From sequence record AP018399.1: a stretch of DNA of 64,000 nucleotides; one strand, written 5' to 3'. The position numbers were made by a program, and so were the translations under genes. Under the pieces are notes generated by a model that worked only from the letters and a program-made list of their open reading frames with translations, was not told the origin of the DNA and searched no databases. Every line of letters starts with the position of its first letter. Position 1 is the first letter of the stretch. Shown piece by piece: positions 5,964 through 15,525 of this stretch.

Positions 5964-6365
5964 ATGTTTTTGATTCGCAATTTGTTTAAGAAGAAGGAAC
6001 CTGTGGCTCCTGTGTTCTCTGAGGACACTATGCGACTGGCTCGCCATATTGAGTCTCATGGGTTCGATATTCGCAGTGTCAACAATGAAACCTACCATGC
6101 GGGCTGTGGCGGCGAATTGCCGACTCCGGGCTACCGCGATATCAACATTCAGTTGTCGGACACCACGAGCATCATGGCTCGCGTGTTGAGGGGTGGTAGG
6201 GAAATCCGCGTATTCGGTCGTGTCAAGTCTCCGACTGATGATTTGGTGGCCGCTAGCGTCCCGCACGAAGCCTTCTCTGCCGAGTTCGTGGGTAAGGTTG
6301 CTGATATGGTTCGTAACCGTGCATCGCTGCGTGCTGCGGCTCTGGTCAATGAAATGGCCCTCTGA
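5964..6365 (+). CDS. hypothetical protein (lacks array motif)
   Basis: GAGG RBS, 133 aa. Confidence 0.75.
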   Translation: MFLIRNLFKKKEPVAPVFSEDTMRLARHIESHGFDIRSVNNETYHAGCGGELPTPGYRDINIQLSDTTSIMARVLRGGREIRVFGRVKSPTDDLVAASVPHEAFSAEFVGKVADMVRNRASLRAAALVNEMAL

Positions 6366-6371
6366 TATAAT
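6343..6371 (+). promoter_or_regulatory. sigma70 extended -10 promoter (leaderless)
   Basis: TGaTATAAT; ATG 6 nt downstream. Confidence 0.65.
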
Positions 6372-6377
6372 TCAGTC

Positions 6378-6764
6378 ATGGAATTCATTAAAAAGCCTCT
6401 CAAAGCAGCCATTCAGTTGGTCAGCACGGTCGATTTCCATGCTGATGACGTGAAGATTGCCAATGTGCGTACCAAACGCATTCAGAGAGCGTTCCATGAG
6501 TTCGGAATGTCTTTCCCCACCAGTTACAATGGCAATGAGACTTATTGTGTCTTGCTGGGGGAAATGCCTGACCTGATTAAGCTGACCTTGAAGGTCAAAC
6601 CAATCAATCGTTACTTTGCTCTGGTTGAGAACAACCGAGAGCATCGGTTTATGGTTGTTGGCGAATGGGATTGGCGTCCTGACAAGGATACGATTCCGCT
6701 TCGCCGTGACCAGCTACACGAAGAGGTCATGGAATTCATCAATGATTATTCGGATTTGGATTAA
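6378..6764 (+). CDS. array paralogue 6
   Basis: EEVMEFINDY. Confidence 0.8.
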   Translation: MEFIKKPLKAAIQLVSTVDFHADDVKIANVRTKRIQRAFHEFGMSFPTSYNGNETYCVLLGEMPDLIKLTLKVKPINRYFALVENNREHRFMVVGEWDWRPDKDTIPLRRDQLHEEVMEFINDYSDLD

Positions 6765-7177
6765 TGTTTAATTTGCCTCCTGATGCGGACGTAACCCTTC
6801 GTTTGTTGCCCGATACTGGAATCAAGACCATGTATTACAAGAACACTCCCCGTAATACCTCGTTCGATGAGGCTGATGTTCCTGTCGCCAAGATGCGCTT
6901 CAACAAGATGCGTGGCTATTTCTACCTATTCCATGACAAGGTAGGTGGTACCCGTGCTTCCCGCGATGGTGAGCTTTATTCCTGCGTGGTCAATGACGTG
7001 CGCTTGGGTATGTTCTTCCGCAGTGATGGAACTGGATTCTACTTGCAAATTGGCGAGGAATCGTTTGATTTTGAGACGCAAGATAATTGGGTCCATAGCG
7101 ACGTTGAAGTTGTCGGTCGTAATTTTCCAATTATTGAAGAATTCATGGAGTTTATTGCAGACTACTACGAATTGTGA
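6764..7177 (+). CDS. array paralogue 7
   Basis: MRFNKMRGYF; EEFMEFIADY. Confidence 0.8.
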   Translation: MFNLPPDADVTLRLLPDTGIKTMYYKNTPRNTSFDEADVPVAKMRFNKMRGYFYLFHDKVGGTRASRDGELYSCVVNDVRLGMFFRSDGTGFYLQIGEESFDFETQDNWVHSDVEVVGRNFPIIEEFMEFIADYYEL

Positions 7178-7183
7178 TACGAT
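7155..7183 (+). promoter_or_regulatory. sigma70-type promoter embedded in 3' end of paralogue 7
   Basis: TTGCAG-17-TACGAT with extended TG. Confidence 0.6.
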
Positions 7184-7208
7184 ATCGGTCTAGTAAAGGA
7201 TTAATTCT

Positions 7209-7598
7209 GTGGCCGATTTGATTAGTAGTCGTGATAAACTAATTGATTTCGTAGAACGTCTGGAATATGACGCGGATAAGGTGTCTTGCACATTTAATCG
7301 CAATCCACCAGACCGGGATTATTACGGAAAGCTGGAATTCTATTACGACGATTTCCGAATTGAAGTGAGTTTTTACGTCAATCAGGATAAGCCTTCACAG
7401 AATAGTGCAATTGGCGTCAAGTTCAATAGCCATGATGGGCATCGGGAAGTATTTCTTTCCAGTGTGTCCGATAGTTTGGCGGTATTCTCTCCGGCATTTC
7501 ACAAGAAGGTTGCCGCATGGGCCAGCGAGGCAATGGGCCTGAATGAGCCGGATGACGACGAAGACTGGTTCGTTAGCAAAATAGGTGTTGTTTCCTGA
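7209..7598 (+). CDS. hypothetical protein (lacks array motif)
   Basis: AAGGA RBS, GTG start. Confidence 0.75.
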   Translation: MADLISSRDKLIDFVERLEYDADKVSCTFNRNPPDRDYYGKLEFYYDDFRIEVSFYVNQDKPSQNSAIGVKFNSHDGHREVFLSSVSDSLAVFSPAFHKKVAAWASEAMGLNEPDDDEDWFVSKIGVVS

Positions 7599-12590: not shown

Positions 12591-13346
12591 ATGCAAATTG
12601 AAACCGTTAAACCATATCCGAAGTATCCGATTTCCATGTACAAGGAACATGACCATGTTGTTCATGGCGTTCCAAGTGGCTGGGAAGCCTCTACGCTTTG
12701 GATTTGGTTGAAGACGCTGGAAAGCATGGAAGGTGTCACCGTTCTGGATATCGGGGCGTACACGGGCATCTACGGCCTTCTAGCGGCCAAGTACGGCAAG
12801 GACGTAGACGTGATTGCCTTTGAGCCGCTTAAAGCCACGTATACGCGCCTACAGGCCAACATCGGCCTCAATGCACTATCAGACACCATGAAGGCGTTCC
12901 CGGTCGCCCTGAGCGATTCTAGCGGCTCTGTGGAGCTTAACGTGACTGGCGACAATCCGTTGCCGTCCGGCTCATCGGTTGACCCGCATCCATCCAAGGC
13001 TAACGTCCGCGTTGAAACCATCCAGTTGACGACCGGTAATGACTTCTTCACGTTCAAGCATACGCTCAAGAAGAAGGTGGGCTTGATTAAGATGGACGTT
13101 GAGCGACACGAACTGCACGCTCTACGTGGTCTGACTGACATTCTAGTTTCAGATAAGCCCGTTTGCATTATCGAATTGCTGACTCCCGAAGAGGCTGTCG
13201 CAGTATTCGACTTCATGCGAGAAATCGGCTACACAAAAATTTATCAAATCAATGACGCACCAGTCATTAGCGATAAACTATACAAGGAAGTGACCGATAA
13301 TTTGGTCATTACTTCCAGTAAAACCAATTTCATGTTCAAGGAATAA
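12591..13346 (+). CDS. FkbM-family SAM-dependent methyltransferase
   Basis: VLDIGAYTG, VIAFEP, IKMDVE motifs. Confidence 0.85.
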   Translation: MQIETVKPYPKYPISMYKEHDHVVHGVPSGWEASTLWIWLKTLESMEGVTVLDIGAYTGIYGLLAAKYGKDVDVIAFEPLKATYTRLQANIGLNALSDTMKAFPVALSDSSGSVELNVTGDNPLPSGSSVDPHPSKANVRVETIQLTTGNDFFTFKHTLKKKVGLIKMDVERHELHALRGLTDILVSDKPVCIIELLTPEEAVAVFDFMREIGYTKIYQINDAPVISDKLYKEVTDNLVITSSKTNFMFKE

Positions 13347-13348
13347 CA

Positions 13349-13843
13349 GTGGGAATCAGCACTAATTACTACGTCGGCTATCACGTCAGGGTAGAAAACA
13401 AGAAATTCGAAGAATCCAACTTCTATTTGCGCAAGCATTGTTCCAATGCTGGCTGCAATAACTTCGCTGGTAGCATTTCGGGTAGTTTCTGTGCAGATTG
13501 TGGCTATACTACAATGGAGTCCATGACGGAAGCCAAGAAAACTACCACCACTGGACTCCCAGAAGCATTCCGTATTCGCAATGACGAAGATGCTTTTGCT
13601 GTGTTCTATAGCGATGATAGGACTTCCATTTTCCTAATCCCGAATTATATGCACATGGCAGCAAAATACGGTGTTCTGACCGAAGAATTTGAACGTGCTG
13701 GTATCACTTCGTTGGGTATTATCGGACCTTTCGCTGAAAAATTCGATGAATTCCGCGAATCATACGCATCGTTCCTGAAAACTCTGGACGAAGCAAGCAT
13801 CACATACCATGTCGAATACGGCATTGTAAAGTATTACTACTAA
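13349..13843 (+). CDS. hypothetical protein with Cys cluster (possible Zn ribbon)
   Basis: CSNAGC...FCADCG. Confidence 0.65.
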   Translation: MGISTNYYVGYHVRVENKKFEESNFYLRKHCSNAGCNNFAGSISGSFCADCGYTTMESMTEAKKTTTTGLPEAFRIRNDEDAFAVFYSDDRTSIFLIPNYMHMAAKYGVLTEEFERAGITSLGIIGPFAEKFDEFRESYASFLKTLDEASITYHVEYGIVKYYY

Positions 13844-13851
13844 GAGGAAAC

Positions 13852-14034
13852 ATGGGTAACGCATTTCCAACGGTTCAAGAAAGAACCTTTTACTATTTCA
13901 CCAGCGGCGACAAGAAATTTGAAAGTAGCAACTACAGCACTGTAGTTCGTGAACGTCTAGCAGCTATCGACCGTGGTGAAGACGTTTCAATTATCGGGGT
14001 TGTTCTAAACCCTATCCGACTAGCGGTATCCTAA
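13852..14034 (+). CDS. hypothetical protein
   Basis: GAGG RBS, coupled to next gene. Confidence 0.65.
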   Translation: MGNAFPTVQERTFYYFTSGDKKFESSNYSTVVRERLAAIDRGEDVSIIGVVLNPIRLAVS

Positions 14035-14285
14035 TGGCTGGCTATCACCTACGCGAAATTCCGAGAGGAACCTACGGCGAACTCTCCAAGATTAAGGAAG
14101 AGATTGAGGAAATCGAAGACTCAATCGCACAGGGCTGTAAGGTGATGGAACTAGTTGAATTGTCCGACCTATATGGAGCTATCGAAGGCTACCTTGGCAA
14201 GTATCATCCGACCGTGACAATGGAAGACCTACGGGTTATGTCTTCCATTACGAAGCGTGCATTCAAGAGTGGTGCCCGAGGATGA
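14034..14285 (+). CDS. MazG/PRA-PH-like all-alpha NTP pyrophosphohydrolase
   Basis: KIKEEIEEIED...ELSDL acidic ExxE/ExxD pattern. Confidence 0.5.
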   Translation: MAGYHLREIPRGTYGELSKIKEEIEEIEDSIAQGCKVMELVELSDLYGAIEGYLGKYHPTVTMEDLRVMSSITKRAFKSGARG

Positions 14286-14872
14286 GTATGCTAATCGACT
14301 ACAACCTAATCGGCAAAGCCGTTGACTTCTACGTGGCTAAGGGCTACGAGCATATCAACGTGGATTGGATGGTGGCTCCACGCTTTTCCTTCATGACGTA
14401 TGGAAAGGAAGGGGCACAATTCCGTACCTTGAGTTCTACCGGGTATGCCCAGCATTTGGTTGGGTCTGCCGAACAGGGATTCATCCAAGCAGTAAATAAG
14501 AAGGAAGTCGAATTTGACCGCCGCTACGTCAGTGTGACCCCGTGTTTCCGTCGTGGCGATATTGGGCCAGTGAACCAAGAATGGTTTATGAAGGTCGAGC
14601 TAAGCGCTGTGTCCAAGGACAATACCGTCTGGTTTGAAGAAATGCTGGAAGACGCTTGGCAGTGCTTCGATTACCTTGGGGCACAACAGGGCAAAATGCG
14701 GCTCTGGCTAGACGATAACGGCCAAAAGGATATCATGCATGAATACATGGATGGGTATCTAGAACTTGGCTCCTACGGTTATAGAAGCCTAGACGGCTTG
14801 ACAAATGGCAATTGTTTGATACACTATGCAACGGGATTAGCACTCCCGAGATTCCAACTCATCCTTCCATGA
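14282..14872 (+). CDS. stand-alone class II aminoacyl-tRNA synthetase-like catalytic core
   Basis: motif-1-like FYVAKGYEHI, GSAEQ, motif 2 PCFR...FMKVEL, ELGSYG, motif-3-like TGLALPRF; no anticodon domain. Confidence 0.75.
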   Translation: MSMLIDYNLIGKAVDFYVAKGYEHINVDWMVAPRFSFMTYGKEGAQFRTLSSTGYAQHLVGSAEQGFIQAVNKKEVEFDRRYVSVTPCFRRGDIGPVNQEWFMKVELSAVSKDNTVWFEEMLEDAWQCFDYLGAQQGKMRLWLDDNGQKDIMHEYMDGYLELGSYGYRSLDGLTNGNCLIHYATGLALPRFQLILP

Positions 14873-15189
14873 CAATCCTGAACAACAATATGAACCACGC
14901 TTCCGCTGCTGCTCTGGTTATGAACGCCTTCAAGAAGACCGCCAAGGTCAACTTCAAGCCGTATCACTGGACGTTCACCACGAAGGATGGGACCGAAACC
15001 GTCGAGTTCATCGCCGGTAAGCTTGAGTCGCAGTACGTCTACACCCGCGTGAAGAAGTTCCTGTGCTTCAAGCTGGGCGTCGAGCGTGTGTACCTGTCCA
15101 GCAGCGATGCAGAAATGGATATGGCCCTGTGGCACCAGATGGGCGACGTGATGCACAACACCGTGGCTCGCTTCGGAGTTAACGCATGA
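14869..15189 (+). CDS. hypothetical protein
   Basis: ATGA overlap at 14869 (track starts 14812). Confidence 0.7.
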   Translation: MTILNNNMNHASAAALVMNAFKKTAKVNFKPYHWTFTTKDGTETVEFIAGKLESQYVYTRVKKFLCFKLGVERVYLSSSDAEMDMALWHQMGDVMHNTVARFGVNA

Positions 15190-15509
15190 CCCAGATTGAA
15201 AAGCTAGTCTCATTCATTGAGGACGTATTCCGTCACTCCCCATCCGACCGCTTTGAAGTTAAAGAATTGGAGACTGGTACTCCAATTCTTTTTGACAAGG
15301 TGAACCGTATCCGCGTGGTTCTTCACGTTCAGGATATCATGGTCACCAAGTACCACAGCGAATCGGGCGACCTACAGGATGAGATTGTCGTATCGTGGCA
15401 TAATCTAACTAAGTCTCAGCGTGAGCGTATCACCGACCTAGTTGACGTTCCGGATGACCTAGACCCGGAAATTGAAGAGACACTATCAGAAATGCTAAAG
15501 GGCGTCTAA
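15186..15509 (+). CDS. hypothetical protein
   Basis: ATGA overlap, ends in terminator. Confidence 0.7.
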   Translation: MTQIEKLVSFIEDVFRHSPSDRFEVKELETGTPILFDKVNRIRVVLHVQDIMVTKYHSESGDLQDEIVVSWHNLTKSQRERITDLVDVPDDLDPEIEETLSEMLKGV

Positions 15510-15525
15510 GACGCCCTTTTCTTTT
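15497..15525. terminator. intrinsic terminator between convergent genes
   Basis: AAAGGGCGTC-taa-GACGCCCTTT plus T tract. Confidence 0.8.

Follow-up and report, generated by a model that had tools for sequence, protein, structure and literature searches.

What does a phage gain from encoding a short MazG-like pyrophosphatase directly beside a protein that resembles an aminoacyl-tRNA synthetase cut down to its catalytic core? The question is raised by two open reading frames (ORFs), ORF156 and ORF157, of the Xanthomonas citri jumbo phage XacN1. We analyzed them in a stretch of 64,000 nucleotides (here called the window) that matches the XacN1 record, AP018399.1, at 100%; a window coordinate plus 62000 gives the record coordinate, and the pair spans 76034-76872 of AP018399.1. 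An earlier note, made from the letters of the window alone, had described the two ORFs as a two-gene module, and both are present where it placed them:

14034-14285, plus strand: ORF156 (BBA65304.1), 83 amino acids (aa), deposited as "hypothetical protein"
14282-14872, plus strand: ORF157 (BBA65305.1), 196 aa, deposited as "hypothetical protein"
14278-14290, plus strand: coupling junction, with GAGGA within the end of ORF156, the stop codon TGA at 14283-14285 and ATG codons at 14282 and 14288

We found that the two proteins have recognizable enzyme folds with conserved catalytic residues, that they are obligately paired, and that they have been fused to each other repeatedly. We propose, with a probability that we put at roughly 45%, that ORF156 and ORF157 form a two-enzyme complex that acts on small alarmone-type nucleotides, and not on tRNA or DNA, in the service of host takeover or counter-defense.

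Co-occurrence of the two genes was counted in profile-scored viral loci of IMG/VR and genome loci of GTDB. The ligase gene lies on the same strand in 80 of the 80 IMG/VR loci retrieved with the small gene, and the genes mostly abut or overlap. Both gene orders were seen, the small gene being upstream in most IMG/VR loci and downstream in about a dozen. Conversely, when the ligase served as the query, 76 of 79 viral loci contained the small gene (76 of 78 informative ones, as one exception is a contig end), and so did 8 of 11 GTDB loci (8 of 10 informative, again with one contig end; the two real exceptions lie on Planctomycetota and Verrucomicrobiota contigs). Nine distinct fusion proteins join the ligase (N-terminal) to the MazG-like domain (C-terminal) through linkers no longer than five residues. 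On a tree of 232 ligase sequences they occupy four positions, and well-supported branches force at least two origins. Because the linkers are so short, the invariant G-Y-H N-terminus of the small protein adjoins motif 3 of the ligase. The independent fusions, the permuted gene order and the nearly complete co-occurrence argue strongly, in combination, that the two proteins function as a single unit, and the analysis of gene neighborhoods, which the earlier note had named as a check on its module, failed to refute the pairing.

The module is also widespread among large phages. Searches with tblastn detected the small protein in 269 phage records (39-63% identity) and the ligase in 69 records (E ≤ 1e-5); the gap between 269 and 69 is a difference in sensitivity, because, for example, Phapecoctavirus has an adjacent ligase gene that the XacN1 query missed. 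Phages with few tRNAs carry the module as well. Across phages of Alpha- and Gammaproteobacteria, the small protein is 55-63% identical and the ligase 27-41%, and the higher conservation of the small protein is expected if it binds a universal metabolite.

Several loci show variant arrangements. One viral contig (L050) has two tandem ligase genes (6243-6830 and 6843-7493) after the small gene. The largest clade of fusions includes contigs binned as giant virus (L058, L074 and L075, labeled GVMAG), Woesearchaeota (L173) and Woesebacteria (L179); these fusions in giant-virus, DPANN and candidate phyla radiation (CPR) bins may be phage or prophage DNA in the bins, or the module may exist outside classical phages. 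On contigs of Planctomycetota and Verrucomicrobiota (L177, 1686-3428, Pirellulaceae; L180, 2609-4198, Verrucomicrobiia), a partnerless ligase gene directly follows a sulfotransferase gene (PF13469), with a gene of the tryptophan-halogenase type nearby in L180, and the same ligase may here have a cellular use with another nucleotide-using partner.

The ligase was placed by its profile and its predicted fold. ORF157 has no Pfam domain above threshold, and it belongs to phrog_4806 (E 1e-55), which is labeled "histidyl tRNA synthetase." Single-sequence searches of the PDB with either protein returned nothing meaningful, and Pfam and NCBIfam gave only sub-threshold matches; remote matches needed profiles, of which that of the ligase comprises 46 sequences. 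Searched against the PDB, this profile had seryl-tRNA synthetase (SerRS) as all of its top 17 matches (2dq0, E 1e-10), with PylRS and AspRS much further down. The AlphaFold2 (AF2) model of ORF157 (pLDDT 95) had at least 500 PDB matches at E ≤ 1e-3 in Foldseek; all matches listed are class II cores (TMq 0.66-0.78), with the cores of SerRS, SepRS and PylRS at 0.72-0.78. In hhalign, residues 18-194 of ORF157 aligned with residues 214-420 of SerRS (three genuine bacterial sequences, probability 97%, E 4e-11). The aligned blocks pair LVGSAEQ with the TxE loop, TPCFR with motif 2, D150 with D-L-E, E161 with E-I-S-S, and T-G-L-A-L-P-R with the S-G-L-A-V-G-R of motif 3, while F-x-K-x-E is the same block in both. 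The ligase thus shares with SerRS, a class IIa enzyme, the fold, the TxE loop, motif 2, F-x-K-x-E, the E-(I/L) metal block and motif 3 (G-L-A-x-x-R).

Residues S62 and E64 of the TxE-like loop, R90, F102, K104, E106, D150, E161, T184 and R190 are invariant across the 46 ligase sequences, and most members shown have an acidic residue 2-3 positions past R90. The class II motifs 1-3 claimed by the earlier note are borne out for motif 2 (P87-C-F-R90 and F102-x-K104-x-E106) and motif 3 (T184-G-L-A-L-P-R190), which are canonical and invariant; motif 1, which belongs to the dimer interface, is recognizable (family consensus G-Y-x-x-I-E-V-P-W), but XacN1 has Asp28 in place of its usual Pro. The serine-pocket positions E64, E106 and T184 are invariant and aligned with the SerRS blocks. 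We take the residues through which the SerRS of T. thermophilus binds ATP, Mg and the amino and hydroxyl groups of serine to be among these invariant positions.

The ligase differs from SerRS mainly in what has been removed. It has no N-terminal coiled-coil arm, as ORF157 begins directly with the core and residue 214 is the first SerRS residue aligned, and no anticodon-binding or other RNA-binding domain was found in ORF157. Its motif 2 loop is shorter by some six residues, the insertion that separates motifs 2 and 3 is mostly gone, and the core as a whole is about 100 residues shorter than that of SerRS. Moreover, its family is almost entirely viral, scores far under the SerRS family cut-off (TIGR00414, 14.3 bits for ORF157 against 301.65) and is paired with a pyrophosphatase. 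Profile, fold and hhalign agree with the stand-alone class II core lacking an anticodon or tRNA-binding domain that had been read from the window, and by its sequence ORF157 is best described as a minimal SerRS-derived catalytic core without tRNA-binding parts. The ligase is an uncharacterized, virus-specific SerRS paralogue. The names "histidyl tRNA synthetase" and "seryl-tRNA synthetase" are therefore misleading: the nearest relative is SerRS and not HisRS, and normal synthetase function is out of the question for this protein. An ordinary small SerRS that supplements translation would match those database names and the richness in tRNAs of the phages, but with the score under TIGR00414, the loss of the tRNA(Ser)-binding arm and the obligate pairing with a pyrophosphatase, we find this explanation barely credible. 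The "histidyl" label of phrog_4806 has spread into many RefSeq phage records (for instance, L002, 3249-3803; L003, 3230-4084; L004, 3236-3793).

The small protein required more caution. ORF156 belongs to phrog_6408 (E 8e-41), a PHROG of unknown function, and its match to the Pfam family PRA-PH (HisE) is below threshold (E 0.048). It is acidic (isoelectric point [pI] 5.35), and its AF2 model (pLDDT 92) consists of an ordered N-terminal segment followed by three helices. In an alignment of 40 homologues (mean column identity 63%), K19, E22, E23, E26, D29, E42 and D45 are invariant, and E22-E23-x-x-E26-x-x-D29 with E42-x-x-D45 forms the E-x-x-E ... E-x-x-D metal-binding pattern of all-alpha nucleoside triphosphate (NTP) pyrophosphohydrolases. 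The G-Y-H of the N-terminus (Y4, H5), invariant in the same alignment, is unusual. The top Foldseek matches were the HisE structures 1yvw and 2a7w (probabilities 0.96 and 0.91, with E values of only 0.5-0.7), followed by HISN2 and several MazG proteins, and VIA-align gave Z 6.1 for HisE (63 residues, root-mean-square deviation 2.1) and Z 5.2-5.4 for MazG, amid generic helical matches of equal Z. Such weak matches are to be expected for a protein of 83 helical residues; HisE and MazG are the recurring families with the longest alignments among them. Mainly on the strength of its motif, we accept ORF156 as a predicted member of the HisE/MazG all-alpha NTP-pyrophosphohydrolase superfamily, which agrees with the acidic, all-alpha, pyrophosphatase-like ORF of the earlier note.

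Neither ORF is a product of chance, given the many homologues (178 of the small protein and 775 of the ligase at E ≤ 1e-3) and the pLDDT values of the two models. The invariant E-L-S-D-L of the small protein was considered as an ACP-like site that would make it a carrier, a role that we rejected because of its fold and motif. In Acinetobacter phage Lazarus, the small protein forms the N-terminal 80 aa of the 207-aa gp119 (L086, 2501-3124); the same N-terminal arrangement occurs in Acinetobacter T4-like phages, and the remaining 125 aa have no Pfam match.

A published anti-defense protein connects ORF156 to alarmones. Ho et al. screened uncharacterized ORFs of <200 aa within four genes of phage nucleotidyltransferases (NTases) (bioRxiv 10.1101/2022.06.09.495361). 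Among their proteins is Atd1 (anti-TIR defense 1) of Pectobacterium phage PcCB7V, a MazG-like protein that hydrolyzed ppGpp with a Km of about 50 uM and was inactive on ribonucleoside triphosphates (rNTPs) and c-di-GMP (bioRxiv 10.1101/2022.06.09.495361). Atd1 reduced cellular (p)ppGpp, protected from TIR-STING toxicity and gave a tenfold rescue of T5 on retron-TIR (bioRxiv 10.1101/2022.06.09.495361). It was studied alone, and the word "synthetase" has 0 occurrences in the preprint (bioRxiv 10.1101/2022.06.09.495361). Because ppGpp was cleaved and GTP was not, Atd1 needs a 3'-substituent, unlike classical MazG; this requirement recalls HisE, which acts on modified ATP only.

The second gene downstream of the listed NTase of PcCB7V (QQG33502.1) encodes QQG33500.1, a protein of 86 aa annotated as "phosphoribosyl-ATP pyrophosphatase." It is the only MazG-like ORF within four genes of that NTase, the canonical MazG being 30 kb away. 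ORF156 and QQG33500.1 are 54% identical over 81 of the 83 residues (E 3e-31), and QQG33500.1 likewise has a ligase partner downstream. That ligase, QQG33497.1 (29% identical to ORF157), is the fifth gene and lies outside the four-gene window of the screen. The partners are separated in PcCB7V by an insert of about 1 kb (L088, 7948-8953) that holds an ORF on the opposite strand and a second ORF, of 208 aa, for which Pfam gave no match. The insert is absent from the near-identical phages phiTE and CB7 and is probably a mobile insertion; because it pushed the ligase beyond the four-gene limit, the ligase escaped the published screen.

ORF156 is thus like the probable Atd1 in length class, twin acidic motifs and genomic partner, as well as in its full-length identity of 54%. 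The hydrolysis of ppGpp and the protection against TIR are reported for Atd1 and would extend to ORF156 by orthology. Among the functions that the earlier note had listed was the neutralization of alarmones or immune messengers; the alarmone part gains real support from an orthologue that, by position, is Atd1, hydrolyzes ppGpp and blunts TIR abortive infection. The note's further idea, that the MazG-like partner would trim or clear nucleotides, proved too generic, as the tested probable orthologue is inactive on ordinary NTPs. Literature searches found no paper that mentions accession QQG33500 and none that describes the pairing or the repeated fusion; two surveys by the Aravind laboratory mention MazG only generically. 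The novelty seems to lie in the obligate pairing and the fusions, whereas the small protein's family is already published if it is that of Atd1.

The activity published for Atd1 also bears on two precedents for synthetase paralogues outside translation. EpmA/PoxA, AsnA and the amino acid:carrier-protein ligases are, like ORF157, stand-alone class II cores that form an aminoacyl-adenylate and use an acceptor other than tRNA. Truncated class II cores can modify proteins, and the small protein or a host protein could serve as such an acceptor here: E-L-S-D-L superficially recalls the D-S-L site of acyl carrier protein (ACP), and Y4, H5 and K19 are invariant. However, those enzymes derive from other parents (LysRS; AsnRS or AspRS; methanogen-type SerRS with zinc), and their partners are EF-P, ammonia and ACP-like carriers, none of them linked to an NTP pyrophosphohydrolase. 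The core of ORF157 is SerRS-type and not LysRS-type, the fold and acidic motif of its partner are those of HisE/MazG and not of ACP, the small protein family has an enzymatic activity of its own (Atd1), and no phosphopantetheinyl transferase travels with the pair. The EpmA-like or carrier-protein function suggested in the earlier note does not fit this evidence, and we regard protein aminoacylation as very unlikely.

The second precedent is HisZ-HisG, in which a class II paralogue without tRNA function serves as the regulatory subunit of a nucleotide enzyme; in the phage pair, too, such a paralogue is teamed with a nucleotide enzyme, whose nearest structural relatives are HisE. By analogy with HisZ, the module may represent a synthetase paralogue recruited to nucleotide metabolism. 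Taken literally, the analogy would make the SerRS-like subunit a sensor of serine, ATP or seryl-AMP, with allosteric control over the alarmone hydrolase and without any acceptor. Such a role would accommodate the activity of Atd1 alone, and a short HisZ-family cluster appears in the structural list of the ESM Atlas. However, the phage ligase is SerRS-derived and not HisRS-derived and keeps its catalytic residues; invariance extends to the residues of adenylate chemistry and not merely to those of binding (the arginines of motifs 2 and 3, and the metal ligand E161). The phage partner is moreover a hydrolase and not a transferase, and there is no HisG among the conserved neighbors. We consider a purely sensory subunit improbable.

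Our preferred reading is an alarmone-processing complex. Judged by their residues, both active sites of the module look live, and the evidence supports their working together on something universal. A nucleotide is favored over tRNA as the acceptor because the ligase lacks every element that holds tRNA; a small-nucleotide substrate is favored by what is published on Atd1, by the absence of all parts that bind tRNA and by the acidic character of the two families (median pI 5.0 and 5.1, with only 2-4% of members basic). In the proposed mechanism, ORF156, as a short pyrophosphohydrolase of the Atd1 family, would remove pyrophosphate or phosphate from (p)ppGpp-like, 3'-substituted purine nucleotides. 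ORF157 would bind ATP, Mg and, most likely, L-serine, and would form seryl-adenylate. It would then transfer to the nucleotide either serine or AMP, the latter giving an Ap(n)N-type product (as when the 5'-polyphosphate of ppGpp or of an NTP takes up the AMP). This acceptor would be held at the interface of ligase and pyrophosphatase, and the pyrophosphatase would either present it or receive it. The alarmone would in this way be removed or converted irreversibly at the expense of ATP, which would blunt the stringent response and the death pathways of abortive infection. Synthesis of Ap(n)N without tRNA, including that of ApppGpp from ppGpp, is established class II synthetase chemistry. That the amino acid is serine is our inference from these lines of evidence, as are the acceptor and the physiological role.

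A bolder version, which we think unlikely, is that alarmone chemistry has in the mini-SerRS its first dedicated synthetase paralogue: by way of seryl-adenylate, the mini-SerRS would adenylylate or serylate (p)ppGpp or a related 3'-substituted nucleotide in a composite active site to which the Atd1-type pyrophosphatase also contributes, and a nucleotide conjugate would be made or destroyed there. If so, an ApppGpp-type compound or a seryl-nucleotide would be a new kind of phage counter-defense metabolite, and the published activity of Atd1 alone would be only half of the native reaction.

Several points weigh against an alarmone-processing complex. Its main weakness is that Atd1 is active alone, which leaves the contribution of the ligase unexplained. 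Atd1 was sufficient alone both in vitro and in cells (bioRxiv 10.1101/2022.06.09.495361); the ligase is therefore not needed for ppGpp hydrolysis as such. The assay kit used reads both phosphate and pyrophosphate and so does not tell which bond is cut (bioRxiv 10.1101/2022.06.09.495361). The identity of QQG33500.1 with the published Atd1 is probable, by position, as the preprint gives no accession. The specificity of the ligase for serine is deduced from the alignment and from the pocket residues of SerRS, and a physical contact between the two proteins in a complex is our proposal. In two phage lineages, represented by Acj61 and by L136, the ligase has no recognizable small partner. Finally, some contexts point to tRNA or RNA 3' ends: the pair of Vequintavirinae adjoins genes for a CCA-adding enzyme and the 3'-end-repair nucleotidyltransferase RlaP, with Pth too in PcCB7V; RNA ligase genes are neighbors in 9 loci; and two domain fusions exist, of an RNA polymerase (RNAP) alpha-CTD-like helix-hairpin-helix domain to the ligase in CbK-like phages and of an RF-1-like domain to the small protein in L060.

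These contexts suggest an alternative in which the module rescues tRNA 3' ends. The pyrophosphatase would take a 3'-pyrophosphate off the CCA ends of tRNAs (such as one added by toxic defense enzymes of the RelA/SpoT type, for instance CapRel) or would otherwise clean the end, and the SerRS core would dock the terminal adenosine and re-esterify or shield it. The 3'-pyrophosphate that Atd1 requires, and that ppGpp bears and GTP does not, would suit such a substrate, as would the 56 tRNAs and RNA-repair genes of XacN1. Against it, the tRNA-binding elements of SerRS are all deleted and both proteins are acidic. The RNA-repair neighbors are lineage-specific (at most 13 of 80 loci), and elsewhere the pair lies among genes for ribonucleotide reductase (RNR) and deoxynucleoside monophosphate (dNMP) kinase, td and frd. 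If tRNAs were serylated indiscriminately, mistranslation would follow, and the RF-1-like match in L060 is below the Pfam threshold and lacks GGQ. We consider rescue of tRNA ends unlikely.

The fused domains and repair loci have some further features. The ligases of CbK-like Caulobacter phages carry an N-terminal extension of about 80 aa that matches PF03118 in gp133 of CcrColossus (L003, 3230-4084; E 3e-6) and in P0071 (E 4e-7); the extensions in P0086 and P0119 are of similar length without a Pfam match. In the metagenomic phage L060 (5998-6681), the MazG-like domain is followed by a C-terminal match to RF-1 (peptidyl-tRNA hydrolase domain; E 9e-5) that is degenerate and only a hint. The UPEC06 locus, compared with the rV5-type neighborhood of sirtuin, tRNA ligase and MazG in a 2022 survey, has a CCA-adding enzyme and RlaP beside the pair and no annotated sirtuin or tRNA ligase nearby. 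The flanking ORFs of the partnerless ligases in Acj61 and L136 carry no pyrophosphatase signature, and a non-orthologous substitute for the partner was dropped as a candidate.

Neighboring genes also bear on a role in nucleotide pools or DNA modification. There is no conserved third gene, the commonest neighbor cluster being present in 13 of 80 loci; lineage-specific neighbors are a Dda-like helicase, dNMP kinase, RNR subunits, glutaredoxin, a second MazG, RNA ligase, RlaP and Dam. By analogy with MazZ-PurZ or with gp56-gp42 of T4, the pyrophosphatase might convert (deoxy)NTPs to the monophosphates, to which the ligase would add an amino acid. The logic of a MazG-like enzyme with a ligase is known from the 2-aminoadenine (dZ) pathway, and the MazZ and PurZ genes of dZ phages are likewise adjacent and encode a MazG-type pyrophosphohydrolase and an ATP-dependent ligase that uses an amino acid. 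Moreover, the pair lies between frd and td in a T4-like phage and between helicase and RNR genes in Phapecoctavirus, and RNR, dNMP kinase and glutaredoxin recur as neighbors. Yet PurZ has the fold of adenylosuccinate synthetase and not that of class II, and MazZ hydrolyzes dGTP, whereas the tested probable orthologue of ORF156 is inactive on NTPs (dNTPs are not among the compounds reported on). The pair has no kinase, polymerase or exclusion gene as a conserved companion, and the module occurs in >260 phage genomes of very different lineages, for which we know of no reports of amino-acid-modified DNA. The DNA base modification proposed in the earlier note gains no support from conserved neighbors, with no third gene shared, and we judge this explanation to be rather improbable.

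If Atd1 is natively half of an obligate and sometimes fused complex with a mini-SerRS, then how it works and what it really acts on call for a fresh look. At least 269 sequenced phage records contain the module, among them those of phi92, phAPEC8-like, rV5-like/Certrevirus, T4-like and CbK-like phages, Ma-LMM01 and phage G, and the presence of the module in tractable model phages makes the question directly testable. With an alarmone-processing ligase, the few synthetase paralogues whose chemistry lies outside translation (HisZ, EpmA, AsnA and the carrier-protein ligases) would gain a virus-specific member. The assignment to SerRS also corrects the widespread mis-annotation of phrog_4806 as "histidyl tRNA synthetase."

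In XacN1, the pair is part of a packed operon, as seen from the ORF list and the GenBank annotation:

12591-15509, plus strand: same-strand operon ORF153-ORF159, whose genes abut or overlap
12591-13346, plus strand: ORF153, FkbM-family methyltransferase (PF05050, Methyltransf_21, E 5e-15; phrog_8156), three genes upstream of the pair
15497-15519, plus strand: strong intrinsic terminator that ends the operon (10-bp stem with 6 G-C pairs, followed by a T-run)

The ATGA coupling described in the earlier note exists, in that the ORF156 stop codon TGA at 14283-14285 overlaps the ATG at 14282. The Shine-Dalgarno sequence GAGGA (14278-14282) is, however, better spaced for the ATG at 14288, which is the likelier start of ORF157 as judged from the sequence; the junction would be a 4-nucleotide overlap or a 2-nucleotide gap, and the coupling is tight either way. 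Because ORF155/156 and ORF157/158 also overlap (ATGA or TAATG), the overlap of ORF156 and ORF157 by itself is not special in XacN1.

Apart from ORF153 and the pair, no operon member has a family match in Pfam or PHROGs; ORF154 (164 aa, 13349-13843) contains a stretch rich in Cys that matches zinc fingers only faintly (E 0.2-0.3). A methyltransferase gene and two glycosyltransferase genes also lie upstream of the pair in CcrColossus, an arrangement that is not general among the loci. XacN1 has alarmone genes of its own: the paper on this phage lists two GTP pyrophosphokinases, together with a separate MazG.

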